From: Lepidodermella squamata
Lineage: Eukaryota; Animalia; Gastrotricha
Reading direction: 5' to 3'
Length of the DNA stretch: 64,000 nucleotides
NCBI GenBank assembly: GCA_047495785.1
Contig: JBLDXI010000019.1
Location: forward strand, 1,860,001 to 1,924,000
Part shown: positions 13,961 to 27,220 of the stretch, piece by piece
How the letters are laid out: every line of letters starts with the position of its first letter
Numbering within the stretch: position 1 is the stretch's first letter
Program-made: the position numbers and the translations under genes
Notes under the pieces: generated by a model
Database searches by the model: none
What the model was told of the DNA's origin: nothing
Seen by the model: the letters and a program-made list of their open reading frames with translations, nothing else

Positions 13961-16209
13961 TCAAATAGGCCGTTGATATGGAAACATGAGATAGTCACCG
14001 GAGTAAAGACGATCAACCACTCGTCTCAATAAATGACTATTATAAGTAACAGTCGACAAAAATGGCACATCGTGCTGTTTGTGACTCGGTCTAGGCAGAC
14101 GCGGGACTGTTTTGCGGCCTGTGGCACGCCGCGCAAAGTGTTCCAGCTCGCAGTTGAAGTTTTCGAATAAGCCAATAAAGTCGTAATCGATAGCGCAAAA
14201 GTGACAGATGTGCAACTGCGATCGCCAATGAATGTTAAGGTCGCGCGGTGAATTTTCCTCGTCCAGTAGGAACTGCAAAAATTCGTCGAATGTAACAGGT
14301 AAACCGGCATCTATTTCATCCTCTGTAGCATTTACGCGATAATCGTATATTATATTGCTTCCAATTATCTACATGAACACAATTGATTAAATCGATGGAT
14401 GGACTTGAACATAAACCGAAAATACCTATTAATTATTCACAAAATTTTAGTTAAATTCTACGACATCCGTACCGTAACGTGTGGTGATTGTGGACACGGT
14501 AACTTTGGACACTTTCGGCTTTGCAGGTGTTTAGCTTTTCAGGGTTAAATCATGAGGGGTTTTGCATAAAATTTTCCGTCTCTTCAGCTTTCGTTTGAAA
14601 TAAAAACCAAGACGATTGGAGCTGAAATCGGATTTCAGAAAAAGTTACAAGCTGTTAAACTTTGAGTGCCGTTTTGGGACCCCCTTTCTATCTTTCTAAT
14701 AATCGATCAGTTTTCAATAAAAGTTGGCATGAGTATTCTCCTATCTTTACTCTCCCTATAATCGAAGAAAAAATGGCAATCCGTGGCGCGTTTTAGCAGG
14801 GCATTTACCTGAAAAACAGGTGAAAAGTGGGGTAATTTTGGACACTTTTGGACGGTTTAATTATGCGGCTGCGCAGAAACGTATTTTTATTGAACTTCCG
14901 AGAAACAGATGATGCGCCGTCTGTTCATAATTTTTTTCGAAATCTGACCCAAATCTGACGAAATCTGACGAAATCTGATCAAGGTTAAATGAAAAACCAT
15001 GAAAAACAGATAATTCACAATGAAATGGCAATGAAATTGCATATGCAAATGGGTGTCCAAAATTACCCTACTCTAATTGTCCACAGTTACTGGAACAAAT
15101 TTCAATATGCCAGAAGTCAGGTAAAATTCTCGAAATTCTGAAAATTTTGAGAAAATTCAAGAATCACCGTCCCCACCTTTGGTGAAAATTTCAAAAATTT
15201 GGGAGTAAAGGCTGATTTTATTTAATGTTCGAAAAACACGTTTTGTTCAAAGATACACGTCGTTACGGTACTTCCCAGCAGACTTTTTCCAAGAATTTTA
15301 AATTCGAAATACAAAGTAAACTCTGATTTTTCGAATCCGAAGAAGTTCAATAACGAAATTTCATTATCTAGAAATGAATTCCCAGTAATTCAAAGATTAA
15401 AGTTGCTTTTACCCTGTAAAGACGTGTGACAATGCCATCCGACTCGGTTGTAGACAATTTTTCGCGCCACGCTGATATCATCCGATCGACAGGTTCTCGA
15501 AGAAACGCGAATTTAGTGTATTCAGCCAATATCTTCTTTGCTTCTTCTGGCTCAAATTCTGACAGGCGTCGTACATGCGGCATAGATTCAAACAAGTGAA
15601 TTTTCATCATCTCAGTTCGATTGTAGTCGTACGTTTCCAAGTCTGGATGTTCGCTAAGATGCTTGATGTAGTGGCGAACGTTTGTATTGCCATTTTTCGG
15701 GGTGCTGAAACTTTTAGAGAAATAAAATAAAAAAGCCATTTTTTAAATAAGAGGTCTTACCCGCAATAAACGAGTTTGTATTTTTCGTTAACAAATATTT
15801 CAGTCCACCAAAGCGAAAAATCACTTTTGGATAATGGGATAAGGAGAAATTTCGAATAAAAAGTAATATGACCAGCAGACCTGTACCAATGATTGCGATT
15901 TTCCCGAAAATTCACCCAATCAAGACTTCTGTGAGGCGGGTTCGGCCTGCTTGCTATCAAGTCGCAAATTTCACGGATTCTAAGTCGCCTCAGCTGATTC
16001 TCTTCAGCTATTTTCGCGTCACTCTATAGACGGATTAAAATATTTGCAAATATCGCTGAGTCATTTACCTGGCAAGCGGGGTGATCACTAGCCGGTATAA
16101 ATCGAAATCTGAAATTGTACCAAACCCGCAGGACGGTACAGCATAACAAGGATAAACAGCAAATAATTTTCAATTTTAAGGTGGAGCGACGCATGAGAAG
16201 TACTAACAT
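13961..16209 (-). CDS. Carbohydrate (chondroitin/HNK-1-type) sulfotransferase, Sulfotransfer_2 family, ~4 exons
   Basis: Type II TM anchor; 5'-PSB motif YC..PKNGNT; 3'-PB motif FLREPVDRMISAW; HW..Q..ICHFCAIDYDFIG..E; C-terminal LY..DYLMFPY. Confidence 0.85.
14470..15270. mobile_element. ~800 bp non-autonomous TIR element (MITE; TA-flanked CCGT termini, pogo/Tc2-like) in a sulfotransferase intron
   Basis: Left end TACCGTAACG, right end CGTTACGGTA. Internal inverted motifs GGGTAATTTTGGACAC (~14830) and GTGTCCAAAATTACCC (~15053). A 10-bp tandem repeat AAATCTGACG x4 at ~14940. Confidence 0.65.
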
Positions 16210-20922: not shown

Positions 20923-21726
20923 TTGATGGGTTGAATTTTTTGCCACGAAAGTGATTTGTAGTCTTTCATCCTATTATTTTTCTTGCGAGGCCTACCTGAG
21001 CAGCTCTTTGTTGATAACGCTAGCGCCTTGTTGATAGGCTACTTAGAGCCGTGCGCAGATAAACCGAAATTTGCGTAATAAATAGTTACATTTAAAATCG
21101 AATAAGTACTTCCATTAATACTCGCGGATGTATTTATTTACACGCCTCGAGTGATGAGTAGTATTACGCCGCGCTTCGCGGGCTAAAATAACAGCGGGTG
21201 TGTAGAAAATGTGTGGAAAGAGGCGCGCACTATACTCCTCACCTAGGCCGGCGAAACAGGGTGAATTTGCGCAATAGCCGAGCGAGTGATTTCTCCTGCA
21301 TGGACTATACCCCGCTTGTATTAGATTCATAACAAATAACAAATAACAGACTGAACGTTACTTTGTTCCAAGGAAACAATTGCGCGTGAAAAACGGAAAA
21401 TTATGTTTTCATTATTTCTTTTTATTCCGGGATAGAGTTCTTTATGGGAAGAAACTTCAAAAACGAATCAATTGTAAATTGTTGAGGATAAAATCGTAAA
21501 TATAAGCAACCTTTTTTACAAAAATTTACCTGTGACTTTTGTCGATAGATCAAAAGGCCTCAAATAAAAGATAAGGCGATAAAACATATGTTATACAGCC
21601 ACGAAAGCAGTCCATCGTAAATTTTGTCGGAAATTACAACCGATGATGTATGATAGGGATTTGATTCATATTTTTAGCTATCTCTCATGATCATTATAAA
21701 TTGTAGCAGGGTGAAATAAGGAGAAT

Positions 21727-21799
21727 GACTCCGTAGCTCAATTGGCAGAGCGTCTGACTCCAGATCAGAAGGTTGCGTGTTCAAGTCACGTCGGGGTCA
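21727..21799 (+). tRNA. tRNA-Trp (CCA)
   Basis: GACTCCG...CGGGGTC-A acceptor stem; anticodon arm TCTGA-CTCCAGA-TCAGA; GTTCAAGT T-loop; T7 Pol III terminator immediately downstream. Confidence 0.95.
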
Positions 21800-21925
21800 T
21801 AGTTTTTTTGTAGCACGAGATGACTTTATTTTTGTATTATTTTTTTACTTCTAATGTGCTTTAAGTTCGGCTCGAAACTATTGAGACTTTGATTTGTTTT
21901 TAGTTTCATGCCCCCATGTTTCAGG

Positions 21926-22091
21926 GGGTGAGCCGAATCCCGGAGGTACTGCAATACCGGGCCGACTCGTGGACGGGGTCCAGCAAGCTGGCTGCTCCCG
22001 CCCGGCTAGCCAAAAATAGGGCTAATATCGTAGGCCCCACATGGAGGCCGTTGTAGATATTAAACTACAAAGAACAGATACTACACTTTGA
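21926..22091 (-). ncRNA. U2: U2 snRNA, 3' portion (from ~nt 28 to the 3' end), separated from its 5' end by a LINE insertion
   Basis: Reverse complement reads TCAAAGTGTAGTATCTGTTCTT (branch-point recognition GTAGTA), loop IIa TTTAATAT, Sm site ATTTTTGG and stem IV CCCGG-TATTGCAGTACCT-CCGGG, ending in CACCC. Confidence 0.93.
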
Positions 22092-22360
22092 GGAACGAGC
22101 ATCTTTATTAGGAAGTGAAAATATTCGAATACCCGAGGGTAAACCACAAATAACGATGATTCGTGTACATCTAAATGTCGCAAAAAATATATTCGGCGCG
22201 CCGAAATTCCCGCTAATTGCGGGGTGCATAATGGCGTAAGTGCAACACTGGCAGAAAAATTGATGATTAATTATTTACATCAAGGCCTATATTATCACAT
22301 TATTTAGCTATAATTTGAAAACTCTTCTTGACCGGACTTCTTATCAAATTTTCACCATGG

Positions 22361-25297
22361 TCACGCCTCAAAGGACGGGATCGACGGCGGTCGGTCGCGG
22401 GACTCAGGCAGAGGGCCTTCGCCTAGGATGGTGTCGAGGAAAAACCGGATTGGCGAGTCACTTTTGTCATTGGGTGCATCCCGGCACCTCCGAATGATGT
22501 CGTTGAGCGGGCCATTGACTGAGACCGACTTGTTGAGGGCATTGAACGTCACGTTGCCGATTCGCTCCGTGATTGGCACGAAGCCAGGGAAAACAGCGTC
22601 GACTCGCTGTTGAAAAACGGTTGTAGGTGTCCGGCGATGAAGACCAAGAATGGCCTTGAGCGCCCGCTTCTCGATCAGTGCCAACTGCTCGAGCAGCCCA
22701 GGGTTGAGATTGGCGAAAACAGGGCAGCCGAATTCAATCAGCGGCCGAATCGTCGCTTTGTAGAACAGAAGACCGAGCTGCGGGTTTGAGGCCAGTCGCC
22801 CTCGCCGCAAAGCGGCGACTCGCGGCATCGCCTTTGCACGGACGTGCTCGACATGCCGACGCCAGTTCAGGTGCTTGTGCAGCCATACGCCCAGGTATTT
22901 GAACTCCTCGGCGCGCGGTAACGACTCGCCACAGACTTGCAGCCCAGCGCCACACTTCATGCCCCAGGCATTGAACGCGACCCATTCGCACTTGCGCGGG
23001 TTCAGGTCCAGACGCCAGCGATACGACCAACGCTCGGAGACGCGGAGGGCGCTTTGGACACGAGCGGTAACCAGCGCCTCGGGGTGACCAGTAGCCCAGA
23101 TCGCCTGGTCGTCGGCGTAGGCGGCGGCGGCGGTGCGCTTCATCGCATCGTCCGGGTTGACTTCGGCGGGAAGCGAAGTAGCTGTGTAAATAATGAACAA
23201 AATTGGTGATAACGGCGACCCTTGCGGGACGCCACAATCGCAGTTGAAGGGCTCACTGAGCTGCGACCCAACCCTGACTCGAGATTGACGGCCACGCAAG
23301 AAGTCGGAGCACCAGCGAACGACCGGCTCGGGCAGACCGAGACCTTCGAGGGCGAGTCGGAGCCCGTTGTGCCATACGCTGTCGTAGGCCGCGCGGTAGT
23401 CGAGAAAGGCGGCCACTGTCACCAGCCTTCTTCTCTCTTCGCCAGTTTCCTCGCCAGTGTCGGAGCGCCCCTCGCAAATGTCGTGTACCAAACGTAGGAT
23501 TGCATCCAGCACCGACCTCAGCCGCTGAAATCCGACCTGGCTGGCCGGCAACTTGCCGTGCTGGATGCAGAAGTCCAGCAAGTACGCTGCGATGACGGCC
23601 TCCATGAGCTTGGCGACGCACGACAGCAGCGACACCGGGCGGTACCCATCGACCGACTGGGCGGACTTGCCGGCCTTCGGGACAGGGACCACGACTGCGA
23701 CCTTCCAAGCGCTAGGGACGAAACCTGTACTAAGGCTGTAATTAAATAAAAGCAATAGGGCATCATGTAGGGCAGGTGGCCCATTTTTAATCAAAGGGTT
23801 CAATATACCATCCTCGCCTGGTGCCTTGAGGCGAAGCTTGTTGAGCTGCGCAAAGAAAGCAGCGCGCGTAATACTAATAGGCAGCGCGTGTGGCAGTGTG
23901 CGGAGTGGCCGGAGTCCTGGGTTCGAATCACACGCTGTGTCGACAGAGCGCCAAAACTCGCGATCCTCGGCGTGCGGGCTTGACCGCGGCGCGGACTTGA
24001 ACGTAGGGGCCCAGTTATTGGCGAGTGCCTGAGCCTTGTCCTCATCGCTAGCTGCCGTAGTGCCATCGGGTAACTGAAGCGGCGGTATCTCACGTCGCGT
24101 GGCCTTTTGCGATCCGAGCAGTCGTTGCGCCTGTTGCCAAGCGAGCGCCGCTTGTTGATCTCGAAACAACGCCGCGATCTGTTCCAACCGTCGTAGGTGT
24201 TCGCGGTGCTTGACCCGCCCGACTGCCTGTGCCACCGTGCGTGTCGCAGCGTTGAGGGCCGCTTTGGACGCGACACTTTGCTCGGCCGCGTGCGACTTTT
24301 CGGCCTCGGAGCGAGCGTCGATTGCTCGGCGGATGTCGTCATTGAGGCGAACAGCCGGCAATTTCGATGCGGCACATCTAGGGATCGTCGCAATTGCGGC
24401 GTCCATCATAACTTTTACTATCGCTCGTGAGAAGGTTTCAAGAGCTTCTTCCGTAGGGTCGCCGCCCTGGGGTTTGACGACAGCAAGTAGCCGCGACGAC
24501 ACATCATCTCCGTATATAGGCCAGTCGGCACGCATAAAATTGAACCGTAAATCTTCAAGCGCGATGGGTGCTAATACAGGGCCGCCCCGAGTAGGGATGG
24601 CGACGTCGGTATAGGTCACGGCGTGATCGCTGCCGTATCTGTTCGCTACAACCGGTGAGGAGTTGAACCAGTCCGCGGCGGTTTTCGAGGCCAACCAGGT
24701 ATCAAGGACACGAGGCGTGTGACCGTCCTGAAAGTGAGTAGGCGCATCCGGCGAGCTAAGCAAGGCGATATCAGAATTCTCAAGCAACTCGTCAAGAACA
24801 AGGCCGCTAGGGTTCAGCCGCTCGTTCCCAAGCACGGACGCCCAGGCGTTCAAATCACCTGCGAATATAGCTGGCGCGCTACCGAAACACAACGCATCAC
24901 GCAAAAAGGCAGTCTCGAGCTCGCTGGTCCACGGGTTATACCCGGTGGCGACAACAAATCTAGTAGCATCATCATCATTACCTAGCTCCAGGCCGACCCA
25001 CTCGCCGCGCAACTCAGGCGCAGAGATCACGGCTTTACAGCTCAGCAGCGCAGCCTCACGCACCAGTATAGCGACCCCGCCGCAGTTCGTACCACGCGGG
25101 TCTTTCCGGTCGCACCTAAATTCAACAAAACCAGTAATATTAAGAACATCACCAGCCTTAAGCCAGGTTTCGTTAAGGATAATAATATCAGGCCTAAAAA
25201 ATTCGATAATCCTAAAAAGTTCAAAAACCTTGCCACCAATGCCACGACAGTTCCATTGTAGGATTCGCAGTCGTCGGAAGCTAGCCATGGTGGACAT
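22361..25297 (-). CDS. LINE ORF2: APE endonuclease + reverse transcriptase (no RNase H or C-terminal CCHC seen)
   Basis: APE motifs LRILQWNCRG, DIIILNETWL, GDLNA, SDH. RT motifs KAPGEDG, YRPVSLLS, FLDYRAAYDSVWH, GVPQGSPLSP, YADD, KYLGV. Confidence 0.95.
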   Translation of the reverse strand: MSTMASFRRLRILQWNCRGIGGKVFELFRIIEFFRPDIIILNETWLKAGDVLNITGFVEFRCDRKDPRGTNCGGVAILVREAALLSCKAVISAPELRGEWVGLELGNDDDATRFVVATGYNPWTSELETAFLRDALCFGSAPAIFAGDLNAWASVLGNERLNPSGLVLDELLENSDIALLSSPDAPTHFQDGHTPRVLDTWLASKTAADWFNSSPVVANRYGSDHAVTYTDVAIPTRGGPVLAPIALEDLRFNFMRADWPIYGDDVSSRLLAVVKPQGGDPTEEALETFSRAIVKVMMDAAIATIPRCAASKLPAVRLNDDIRRAIDARSEAEKSHAAEQSVASKAALNAATRTVAQAVGRVKHREHLRRLEQIAALFRDQQAALAWQQAQRLLGSQKATRREIPPLQLPDGTTAASDEDKAQALANNWAPTFKSAPRSSPHAEDREFWRSVDTACDSNPGLRPLRTLPHALPISITRAAFFAQLNKLRLKAPGEDGILNPLIKNGPPALHDALLLLFNYSLSTGFVPSAWKVAVVVPVPKAGKSAQSVDGYRPVSLLSCVAKLMEAVIAAYLLDFCIQHGKLPASQVGFQRLRSVLDAILRLVHDICEGRSDTGEETGEERRRLVTVAAFLDYRAAYDSVWHNGLRLALEGLGLPEPVVRWCSDFLRGRQSRVRVGSQLSEPFNCDCGVPQGSPLSPILFIIYTATSLPAEVNPDDAMKRTAAAAYADDQAIWATGHPEALVTARVQSALRVSERWSYRWRLDLNPRKCEWVAFNAWGMKCGAGLQVCGESLPRAEEFKYLGVWLHKHLNWRRHVEHVRAKAMPRVAALRRGRLASNPQLGLLFYKATIRPLIEFGCPVFANLNPGLLEQLALIEKRALKAILGLHRRTPTTVFQQRVDAVFPGFVPITERIGNVTFNALNKSVSVNGPLNDIIRRCRDAPNDKSDSPIRFFLDTILGEGPLPESRDRPPSIPSFEA

Positions 25298-26831
25298 TGG
25301 TGGATTGCGCGGCAGAAGTTGGCAGAGCAGGCTGGCTTAAGATGTCGACGCCATACGGGCGCAGCACAGCCGAAAGGCTGCTCGCGACGTTGTCGGTCTG
25401 CATCGCCGGCGGCGGCACGTCGGCGCGAGGTAGGACGATCGGGGCCGACAGCGAGCTGTTGGCCGGCGGCGTAGGCGAGCGTGGGCGATAGCCTCCAGCA
25501 GCAGCGATGATCGCCGGCTGCAGACGAGCGAGGATGCGGTCGACGAGGCGGTCTTCGAAGTTAGCGGGCAGCTCATAGACAACCTCGCTAATCGGCTGTA
25601 TCAACGGGGCAGACGCAGGCGCAGGCGGCGGCACACCTTTCATCAGGTCCGCCACGATGGCTTCGAGGCGCACAATCATAGCAGACTGCGAAGCGACGAG
25701 GGCTCGTAACTGCTCGACTTCGGCTTGGCTCGAATTCGACGCGGCGGCAGGCGGTTGCGGCTGAATCGGCGGGAAATCGGCAGGCCCGGGTGGGACCGGC
25801 TGATGCGAAACGGCGGGTTGGCCGGCGGCCGAGCTTGCTCCGGCAGCGGCGGCAAACGACGTGCCATGGCGGCGAGCAGCGTCACCAGCGCTGCGGTTGC
25901 GAATCGCCCGAGCGCGCTCTTCATCTTCTTTTCGGAGCTTGTCGGTCTGCTGGCGAATAATCGGGCAGCCGTAGTAGTTCGCCGTGTGCTGACCATTACA
26001 CCTACTGCACCTAACACCAGTCGTACTACCACACTTGGCAGCCTCATGGCCACTACCACCACAACGAGAACACACCAACGCCTTGTTGCACTCACGCGCA
26101 TTATGCCCAATCGCCTGGCAACGCGCACATACGACGACCGACTTGGGCTTATGCTTAGGTCGAGCAATCATTCGCACGCCGAGGAAGCTGCGACCATCGC
26201 GGATCAGAGCCTTAGCCTGAGCCTCGGTCTTACACAACACGCCGAAAACGGTGCCTTTCTTCCCAACAGGCCACACTTCATCCACAATATCGGCCCAGTC
26301 GCCTAAGATATCGCTAGCCCTAACGCCACGAAAAAAATTAACGCAGATCGCTTTCCGCGATTCCTCGTCAGCTTTGCGCGCACGAGCAGCAGCGCGATCA
26401 GCAGCTTCGCCGCGCGGCTTTAATTCCTCAAGCGCTTTCTTTATATCAGGATCGAAGTCCTCATGGTCAAAGGACGTCGGGCGATGCGGCCGGGCGTTGC
26501 CGCCGAACGCGGACGCAGGCCAGCCTCTGCGCGTAAGGAGCATCTTCACTGTCGCGGCGTCTTTGCACATCAAGCCAAGTGCGCCACGACGACAGATCCA
26601 TGGCTTCGCGATCTTGGCCTCAGGTGAGACCGCTGTGAGCTCGCGCATGACGTCAACGAGCGAGTTGAACCGAGGCGAGATGCCGTCGATAATTACGATG
26701 CGCTCTCGAGCTGAGACTTTGCCAACTTGGGCAGTGAAACCGTCGCCGGCGTCACCACCTTCATCAGCGCCATCCCCGTCCGAGGTCGCGCCGTCAACGA
26801 CCATCGCATCCCCACCCCACCCCATCCGCAT
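25281..26831 (-). CDS. LINE ORF1 gag-like nucleic-acid-binding protein with three CCHC zinc knuckles
   Basis: CARCQAIGHNAREC, CSRCGGSGHEAAKC, CSRCNGQH....YGC, followed by SFAAAA and a coiled coil. Overlaps the ORF2 start by 17 nt. Confidence 0.92.
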   Translation of the reverse strand: MRMGWGGDAMVVDGATSDGDGADEGGDAGDGFTAQVGKVSARERIVIIDGISPRFNSLVDVMRELTAVSPEAKIAKPWICRRGALGLMCKDAATVKMLLTRRGWPASAFGGNARPHRPTSFDHEDFDPDIKKALEELKPRGEAADRAAARARKADEESRKAICVNFFRGVRASDILGDWADIVDEVWPVGKKGTVFGVLCKTEAQAKALIRDGRSFLGVRMIARPKHKPKSVVVCARCQAIGHNARECNKALVCSRCGGSGHEAAKCGSTTGVRCSRCNGQHTANYYGCPIIRQQTDKLRKEDEERARAIRNRSAGDAARRHGTSFAAAAGASSAAGQPAVSHQPVPPGPADFPPIQPQPPAAASNSSQAEVEQLRALVASQSAMIVRLEAIVADLMKGVPPPAPASAPLIQPISEVVYELPANFEDRLVDRILARLQPAIIAAAGGYRPRSPTPPANSSLSAPIVLPRADVPPPAMQTDNVASSLSAVLRPYGVDILSQPALPTSAAQSTNVHHG

Positions 26832-26834
26832 CCA

Positions 26835-26858
26835 TAGCCAAAAAGGCCGAGAAGCGAT
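26835..26858 (-). ncRNA. U2: U2 snRNA 5' fragment (nt 1-24, stem I)
   Basis: Reverse complement is ATCGCTTCTCGGCCTTTTTGGCTA, the conserved U2 5' end with one more T than vertebrate U2. Confidence 0.9.
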
Positions 26859-26960
26859 ACTTTTTTGGAAAAAAATTTTTGCCGGGGTCTTGGACTGTTT
26901 TTCAGCCGAACCAGCCGGCTGATTAGCATATGCACCTTGCGATTTGAAGTTTTTATTCGA
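26859..26960 (-). promoter_or_regulatory. Expected U2 snRNA proximal promoter (PSE) region
   Basis: Positional only: directly upstream of U2 +1. Contains an octamer-like ATGCTAAT at ~-70. The lineage-specific PSE cannot be verified by eye. Confidence 0.35.
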
Positions 26961-27146: not shown

Positions 27147-27220
27147 TGCCCCCTGTGAGGATCGAACTCACGACCTCCAGATTATGAGACTGGCGCTCTA
27201 GCCAACTGAGCCAAGGAGGC
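27147..27220 (-). tRNA. tRNA-Met (CAT), elongator type
   Basis: Reverse complement GCCTCCTTGGCTCAGTTGGCTAGAGCGCCAGTCTCATAATCTGG...GTTCGATCC...GGGGGCA; T5 terminator just downstream. Confidence 0.95.

Follow-up and report, generated by a model that had tools for sequence, protein, structure and literature searches.

A LINE of Lepidodermella squamata with a probable preference for the 5' regions of U2 and U1 small nuclear RNA genes

A gene for the U2 small nuclear RNA (snRNA) in the gastrotrich Lepidodermella squamata is interrupted by an intact long interspersed nuclear element (LINE) in a stretch of 64,000 nucleotides, hereafter the window (positions 1860001–1924000 of contig C19, GenBank JBLDXI010000019.1, in an assembly of 121 Mb and 151 contigs). 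The element is best explained as a young, presumably still active, low-copy retrotransposon without long terminal repeats (non-LTR), equipped with an endonuclease of the apurinic/apyrimidinic type (APE), which probably prefers to insert in the sense orientation some 26–28 bp inside the genes for spliceosomal RNAs transcribed by RNA polymerase II (Pol II), U2 and U1, with a certain leakiness. As both U2 and U1 are used, what this family targets is snRNA genes and not U2 alone, and it is termed here the U1/U2 family. From comparison of the insertion sites, it is hypothesized that their placement is governed by the distance from the snRNA promoter.

The interrupted gene is read from the minus strand, and is laid out as follows in window coordinates:

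26869–26893, minus strand: U2 promoter-proximal motif CCAAGACCCCGGCAAAAATTTTTTT, in which CCGG starts 27 nt before U2 +1, with equal spacing in other intact U2 loci
26833–26858, minus strand: U2 nt 1–26, the 5' flank of the insertion, matching the intact U2 of the genome at 100%
22092–26832, minus strand: LINE of 4741 bp in sense orientation in U2, with the empty-site joint present in read contigs
21923–22091, minus strand: U2 nt 28–196, the 3' flank, recognized as U2 by Rfam and matching intact U2 at 100%

The 3' two-thirds of the U2 snRNA are matched by Rfam on the minus strand at 21923–22099 with a score of 121 bits. The genome contains more than 40 intact U2 genes, and every copy that was read starts with ATCGCTTCTCGGCCTTTTTGGCTATGATCAAAGTGTAG; the U2 sequence of the species itself is GGCTATGATCAAAG. 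Upon BLAST alignment of intact U2 with the window locus, nt 1–26 correspond to 26858–26833 and nt 28–196 to 22091–21923, both segments being 100% identical. The LINE between the two pieces runs in the same sense as U2. The empty site was found in contigs assembled independently from public reads, where a single letter separates 22091 from 26833. The insertion is accompanied by neither a target site duplication (TSD) nor poly(A). The original prediction of an intact LINE with two open reading frames (ORFs), lying in sense inside a U2 gene and devoid of TSD and poly(A), is thus confirmed by Rfam, BLAST and the empty-site contigs. The split of the U2 gene had also been recognized correctly, with a small error in the measurements, as the 5' piece is 26 and not 24 nt long and the insert 4741 and not 4743 bp. 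About three target nucleotides had been thought to be missing, a count made against canonical U2 (GGCUAAGAUCAAG, AAGA); with the sequence of the species (TATGATCAAAG, TATGA) a single U2 base, A27, is lost at the insertion.

The motif CCAAGACCCCGGCAAAAATTTTT is found upstream of the interrupted U2 with a spacing to +1 that matches other U2 loci. As this U2-typical distance is kept, the insert must reside in a real gene and not in a retro-copied chimera. A similar motif is present upstream of the spliced-leader gene, as at the U2 loci. The interrupted U2 is flanked within 130–290 bp by genes for tRNA-Trp (21726–21800, plus strand) and tRNA-Met (27147–27220, minus strand).

The LINE itself consists of the following parts:

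25281–26831, minus strand: ORF1, 516 aa, gag-like and open, with an ATG conserved between copies at 26804
25965–26129, minus strand: three Cys/His zinc knuckles of ORF1 (aa 235–289), two CX2CX4HX4C and one CX2CX3HX6C, read from the translation
22361–25297, minus strand: ORF2, 978 aa, open, overlapping the end of ORF1 by 17 nt
24623–25261, minus strand: APE-type endonuclease domain, ORF2 aa 13–225, Pfam PF03372 (Exo_endo_phos) and PF14529
22883–23680, minus strand: reverse transcriptase (RT) domain, ORF2 aa 540–805, with a YADD box, Pfam RVT_1 (E = 8e-30), matching R2 and L1 RT in the PDB
22092–22360, minus strand: 3' untranslated region (UTR) of 269 nt, ending with AATAAAGATGCTCGTTCC without poly(A), with AATAAA at 22104–22109

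The association of a three-knuckle gag with an APE–RT protein, which had been proposed from the letters, is borne out by the translation and by Pfam, the knuckles of ORF1 having no Pfam match at E ≤ 0.01. The APE catalytic residues E43, D148, N150, D224 and H225 are all present in conserved alignment columns. The AlphaFold model of ORF2 residues 1–240 (predicted local distance difference test, pLDDT, of 93.6) compares with the endonuclease (EN) structures of human L1 and TRAS1 with template modelling (TM) scores of about 0.72–0.79; L1 EN and TRAS1 EN are not told apart by the fold search, and no match to the endonuclease domain was returned by phmmer from the PDB. No RNase H, restriction-like endonuclease or C-terminal Cys/His motif was found in the element, and nothing recognizable follows the RT. 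The G+C content is 55–64% in the element versus about 40% in its flank.

Exactly five ends with the same terminus are present in the assembly: that of the window copy, one on contig C10, two on C36 and one on C1. The C10 copy is the only other full-length copy, with about 98% DNA identity to the window copy and 99.8% identity of the ORF2 protein. It sits in a U1 gene in the sense orientation, as the Rfam match to U1 spans its 3' junction. The intact U1 on C10 being AAACTTACCTGGCACTGGGATGAGCCTCGATCACGAAGG, the order at the interrupted locus is ...CACTGGGATG/CTTCTTCG...GCTCGTTCC/TCGATCATGAAGG, where slashes mark the junctions, with 2–4 U1 bases lost. The 5' flank stops at U1 nt 22, or at nt 18 if GATG is counted as part of the element, and the 3' flank begins at U1 nt 25–27. 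This U1 locus adjoins a cluster of seven tRNA genes. The two copies on C36 are identical and internally deleted. They belong to an array (G000:C36:992374–1008339; L033, L034, L036) with a tandem period of 5394 bp, in which each unit comprises an intact U2 gene and a dead LINE with the common terminus fused to U2 nt 28–59. In the stretch that separates the U2 fragment from the following U2 gene, Rfam reports a MIR841 match (L033, 4565–4790) of 84 bits versus a gathering score of 200, which is probably spurious. Fragments of the 5' region of the family were found on C1, C2 and C33, that on C1 having a single-copy upstream flank.

When distinct 3' junctions are counted, together with one that is present in read contigs, three of the five lie in U1 or U2 genes (U2 twice, U1 once), all in sense. 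Since these genes amount to about 16 kb of the 121 Mb, or about 1.3e-4 of the genome, such a proportion is not due to chance. The possibility that the flanks on C1, on the 3' side of the truncated copy and on the 5' side of the other fragment, are small-RNA genes was rejected, both being single-copy and without Rfam match.

About 90 nt of the 5' UTR of the C10 copy are missing from the window copy, which has about 14 unmatched nucleotides at its start, so that its ORF1 follows almost directly after U2 nt 26. The full-length heads all start with GATG...CTTCGTC. In local alignments, the heads of the C10, C1 and C33 copies resemble nt 1–45 of U1 and U2 no better than shuffled sequences do (p 0.25–0.74), and the capture of a U1 or U2 head by the family was rejected, the similarity being at the level of shuffles. 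The heads being unlike the 5' ends of U1 and U2, new copies carry no host leader sequence, which argues that the normal template RNA of the family would start at the element's own 5' end.

A protein search revealed about 30 copies of further ORF2 relatives in the genome, with 51–61% identity. In a maximum-likelihood tree of ORF2, the U1/U2 family and the families designated A, B, B2, C and E, at 51–59% identity to it, form a nine-row clade with a value of 100 in the Shimodaira–Hasegawa-like approximate likelihood ratio test (SH-aLRT), in which the U1/U2 family is sister to the rest; family D was sampled at its 3' junction only and is absent from the tree. Outside this group stand unnamed metagenome proteins and, further out, a group with another U2-resident LINE (L063, L065; 32% identical). 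The 3' junctions of the sister families are found at the following places:

Families A, C, D and E: 3' end just before TGAGGTTAGTATC, the exon/donor junction of the spliced-leader gene, present in about 257 copies
Family B, one copy: U3 gene as 3' flank
Family B, seven loci: a small nucleolar RNA (snoRNA)-like gene with at least 12 copies and the octamer ATGCAAAT upstream
Family B2, one copy: U5 gene as 3' flank

The B2 copy in the U5 gene (L056, L071, L167; G000:C9:5224544–5231100) is full length, with an ORF2 that is 55% identical; its 5' flank stops at U5 nt 26 and its 3' flank begins at nt 27–31. The family B LINE in the U3 snoRNA gene (L053, 3336–3553; G000:C29:986720–986937) has its junction at U3 nt 23–30. 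The snoRNA-like gene (L080 and L081; flanks in L049 and L050) is about 150 nt long, has no Rfam match, ends with ...CTCTGACTT and resembles a C/D-box RNA. At least seven of its loci carry the end of a family B LINE at one fixed site. In the 3' flank of L052 (G000:C74:~980660–983000), two family B LINEs follow one another head to tail, and where they meet the 3' terminus of the first runs straight into the 5' UTR of the second.

Families A, B, B2, D and E share a 3' terminus made of AATAAA followed by 12–14 nt without poly(A); no AATAAA-type signal was seen at the 3' end of family C. The U1/U2 family differs from its sisters by its target genes and by its short 3' UTR of 269 nt, which is free of the repeated GC-rich hairpins of the sisters. 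What is common to the clade is the sense insertion into a small RNA gene transcribed by Pol II, close to its 5' end; in U2, U1, U5 and U3 it occurs about 26–30 nt after the RNA start, with an AATAAA-type terminus devoid of poly(A). The isolated, independent origin that had been imagined for the element of the window is not retained, as it is a member of a radiation of LINEs in this genome that are directed at small-RNA genes in their 5' regions, those for the spliced leader, U3 and U5 among them. The most similar proteins in databases are unnamed sequences from metagenomes or read assemblies, the closest outside ones being P0022, P0024 and P0001. The contig of P0023 stops short of the element ends, and P0027, P0028 and P0032 fall in a poly(A)-tailed group at spliced-leader-like donors.

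The position of the 3' junctions was measured from the 5' ends of the RNAs, taken from Rfam alignments. Because bases may be common to the element end and to the target, each junction is given as the window of its possible positions:

U2, U1/U2 family: 27–29 nt from the RNA 5' end
U1, U1/U2 family: 24–28 nt from the RNA 5' end
U5, family B2: 26–30 nt from the RNA 5' end
U3, family B: 23–29 nt from the RNA 5' end

The probability that four such windows share one coordinate by chance is about 6e-5 under uniform placement, and the 5' flank stops at nt 26 in both U5 and U2. A further U2 gene (L066; G000:C42:726423–730644, locus positions 2001–2213) carries a 21-nt insertion, CAATAAAAATTCGGAGCGTGC, composed of AATAAA and 14 nt, with its 3' junction at 28/29; the 8 bp of U2 nt 29–36 are duplicated and lie on either side of it. 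It looks like the extremely 5'-truncated 3' terminus of a LINE, at almost the same U2 position. Another candidate site (L064; G000:C3:1133965–1134166) was rejected, as it is a U2 pseudogene, which has diverged by 6% and carries an internal 5' deletion (ATCGCCTTTTTGATCAAAGTG). The junctions in the spliced-leader and snoRNA-like genes are predicted at about +29, the former if the RNA starts 27 nt after the CCGGCAAAATTTTT motif as in U2, the latter by a similar guess from the promoter motif.

In contrast with the nearly constant distance, little sequence is common to the sites. The 3' flanks of the U1/U2 family are TCAAAG (U2, twice), TCGATC (U1), TCTCTC and TCAAGA, which have only TC in common, equivalent to NGA/ on the nicked strand. 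This TC may pair with the terminal ...CCUC of the RNA. As the flanks share no more than TC, the sequence preference must be weak, and another factor must concentrate the insertions. With almost no shared sequence in the flanks, and a distance to the RNA start that is nearly constant over four genes and several families, the site may be set largely by position.

Alternatively, the endonuclease and other parts of ORF2 or ORF1 could read a degenerate DNA sequence that U1 and U2 happen to have in common (ATGA...TC, GATCA); the shared distance would then be a coincidence or follow indirectly from which insertions persist. This is a possible explanation that we find rather unlikely. It draws on the resemblance of U2 TATGA/TCAAAG and U1 GATGAGCC/TCGATCA, both with ATGA upstream and GATCA nearby, and on the likeness of the off-target site AAAT/TCAAGA in a dispersed repeat to the U2 site. 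Recognition of sequence is known from APE LINEs with specific sites in the R1 and Tx1 clades (PMC4640811), and a more distant LINE family of this genome has look-alike TAGTATCT sites in U2 and in the spliced-leader gene. However, the register of ATGA and GATCA relative to the junction, and hence to the nick, differs between U1 and U2; the sister families are inserted at equal distance in U5 and U3 despite unrelated local sequence; and TC is the sole base pattern in all five flanks.

In the preferred interpretation, integration would proceed by target-primed reverse transcription. The endonuclease would nick the template (bottom) strand just before the top-strand TC, roughly at +27/+28. An RNA with a 3' end lying 12 nt past AATAAA would be copied without a poly(A) tail. 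The break of the second strand 1–4 nt upstream would then produce a small deletion of the target and no duplication. The site would be chosen largely by its position relative to the snRNA-type promoter or to the early transcription complex, to which the nuclease would add a weak sequence preference.

A second alternative is a new lineage that is strictly specific to U2, with the copy in U1 and the others as rare strays, as the original prediction had it. Two points speak in its favour: two independent insertions hit the same U2 nucleotide, which upholds the earlier view that placement in U2 is not random, and the site differs from that of Keno and Utopia. The claim of U2 specificity is nevertheless not supported, given the near-identical full-length copy at the equivalent distance in U1 and two 3' ends outside snRNA genes. 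U1 harbours one of only two full-length copies, and U2 holds just two of the five distinct 3' junctions. Between the window and C10 copies, ORF2 shows 16 base differences and two residue changes, with a ratio of nonsynonymous to synonymous substitution rates (dN/dS) of 0.047; for ORF1 dN/dS is 0.10. Both full-length copies thus descend from lineages that replicated under purifying selection. The synonymous divergence (dS) from C10 (L032) is much greater in ORF1 (0.13) than in ORF2 (0.019), which suggests a mosaic or recombination between two sub-lineages. With equal purifying selection and a sub-lineage evolving separately, as indicated by the ORF1 dS of 0.13, the U1 copy is hardly a stray, and strict U2 specificity is considered very improbable.

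Still less credible, to the point of being negligible, is the absence of any targeting, a single chance insertion in U2 having been spread among U2 genes by duplication or gene conversion: duplication does occur, as the identical C36 copies in the 5.4-kb tandem U2 array demonstrate, but it cannot explain the U1 copy, no derived changes relative to C10 are common to the window and C36 copies, and the chance of at least two of five insertions falling within the roughly 16 kb that U1 and U2 genes occupy is about 1e-7. Over 2.9 kb, the private changes number 9 in the window copy, 11 in C10 and 20 in C36, a star-like pattern without excess sharing between the window and C36, so that the two U2 insertions are separate events and not a duplicated locus. 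Among the other copies in the assembly and in the read contigs, none lies at a random locus with a TSD or poly(A), which would have pointed to chance insertion.

Several observations weigh against the preferred interpretation of a positional preference for snRNA genes. The C1 copy is a 366-bp 5'-truncated 3' end that adjoins a single-copy TC-rich sequence outside snRNA genes. A further 3' end, missing from the assembly, is joined in read contigs to TCAAGAATCACC..., which belongs to a dispersed repeat (GAATCACCGTCCCCACCTTTGGTGAAAATT) with at least 39 copies, one of them at 15148–15190 of the window; this insertion may be heterozygous or unassembled. The copy number is tiny, and the placement statistics rest on few events. 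The occurrence of ATGA and GATCA near both the U1 and U2 sites makes a degenerate sequence target possible. The starts of the spliced-leader and snoRNA-like RNAs are themselves predictions from the promoter motif. A metagenome scan for relatives in other species yielded only proteins of at most 38% identity, none of them adjoining an snRNA. Finally, no RNA runs holding the element sequence were found, and the read contigs confirm its presence as DNA only.

The positional interpretation can be extended, tentatively and with less than even confidence, to the whole clade of APE LINEs. Its members would use a ruler, nicking about 27 bp past the start of snRNA-type Pol II genes (U1, U2, U3, U5, spliced leader and snoRNA-like). 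A tether to the complex bound at the promoter, or else to Pol II in an early or paused state, would presumably guide the element, and the families would differ mainly in the class of genes that they favour.

Among known elements, Keno is likewise an APE-bearing LINE found in U2 in the sense orientation. Downstream of Utopia, U2 resumes at nt 39, and the 3' flank of Keno is identical (Kojima and Jurka, PMC4640811). In the present case the 3' flank begins with nt 28 of the U2 of L. squamata, or nt 27 in canonical numbering, and so lies 12 nt upstream of the published site, as the original prediction of a site distinct from those of Keno and Utopia implied. Unlike Keno, the U1/U2 LINE also uses U1, has a three-knuckle gag and an ORF2 without C-terminal Cys/His motif, and lacks poly(A). 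Membership of the Tx1 clade is weakly disfavoured by the match to PF14529 and by the absence of zf-RVT and of a C-terminal Cys/His motif in ORF2. An ORF1 with three Cys/His knuckles and an ORF2 with N-terminal APE followed by RT constitute the layout of the I/Jockey group (R1, Jockey, I, LOA and others), to which the gag with its three knuckles, the match to PF14529 and the missing C-terminal Cys/His motif point. Utopia, which is NeSL-like, also resides in U2 genes at low copy number, with a C-terminal restriction-like endonuclease and a site at nt 38/39, in contrast to the N-terminal APE and the other site of the U1/U2 LINE. The presence of an APE and the absence of a restriction-like endonuclease show that the element is not Utopia.

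Regarding U1, the elements of snRNA genes known at the time of Kojima and Jurka were only Keno and Utopia in U2 and the Dada DNA transposons in U1 and U6 (PMC4640811), and a 2022 paper by the same author gives no LINE for U1 (PMC8869645). Dada-U1 elements, DDE-type DNA transposons that generate TSDs of 6–7 bp, are specific to U1 snRNA genes (PMC8869645); they occupy U1 like the present LINE, by an unrelated mechanism.

The LINEs of the R1 clade (R1, TRAS, SART) are similar in their two-ORF layout, three-knuckle gag, APE and precise 3' junctions, and R1 also lacks poly(A). The targets of the clade are ribosomal DNA or telomeric repeats recognized by their sequence. If the positional interpretation is true, the same logic is followed by TRE5-A of Dictyostelium and Ty3 of yeast, whose integration keeps a set distance to a transcription complex. 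These two elements use Pol III (tRNA) genes and insert outside the gene, whereas the U1/U2 LINE is found inside the transcribed region of Pol II snRNA-type genes, where such a mechanism is presumed.

Site-specific LINEs are the natural models of programmable gene insertion from an RNA template, and to our knowledge only a handful of their targets have been described. The U1/U2 family adds a new site in U2 and a site in U1, both used by one element. With the sister families that occupy U3, U5 and spliced-leader genes, it provides a natural series for deciding between the reading of sequence and the measurement of a distance from the promoter. A ruler operating at Pol II snRNA genes, if true, would be a new way to find a safe harbour.

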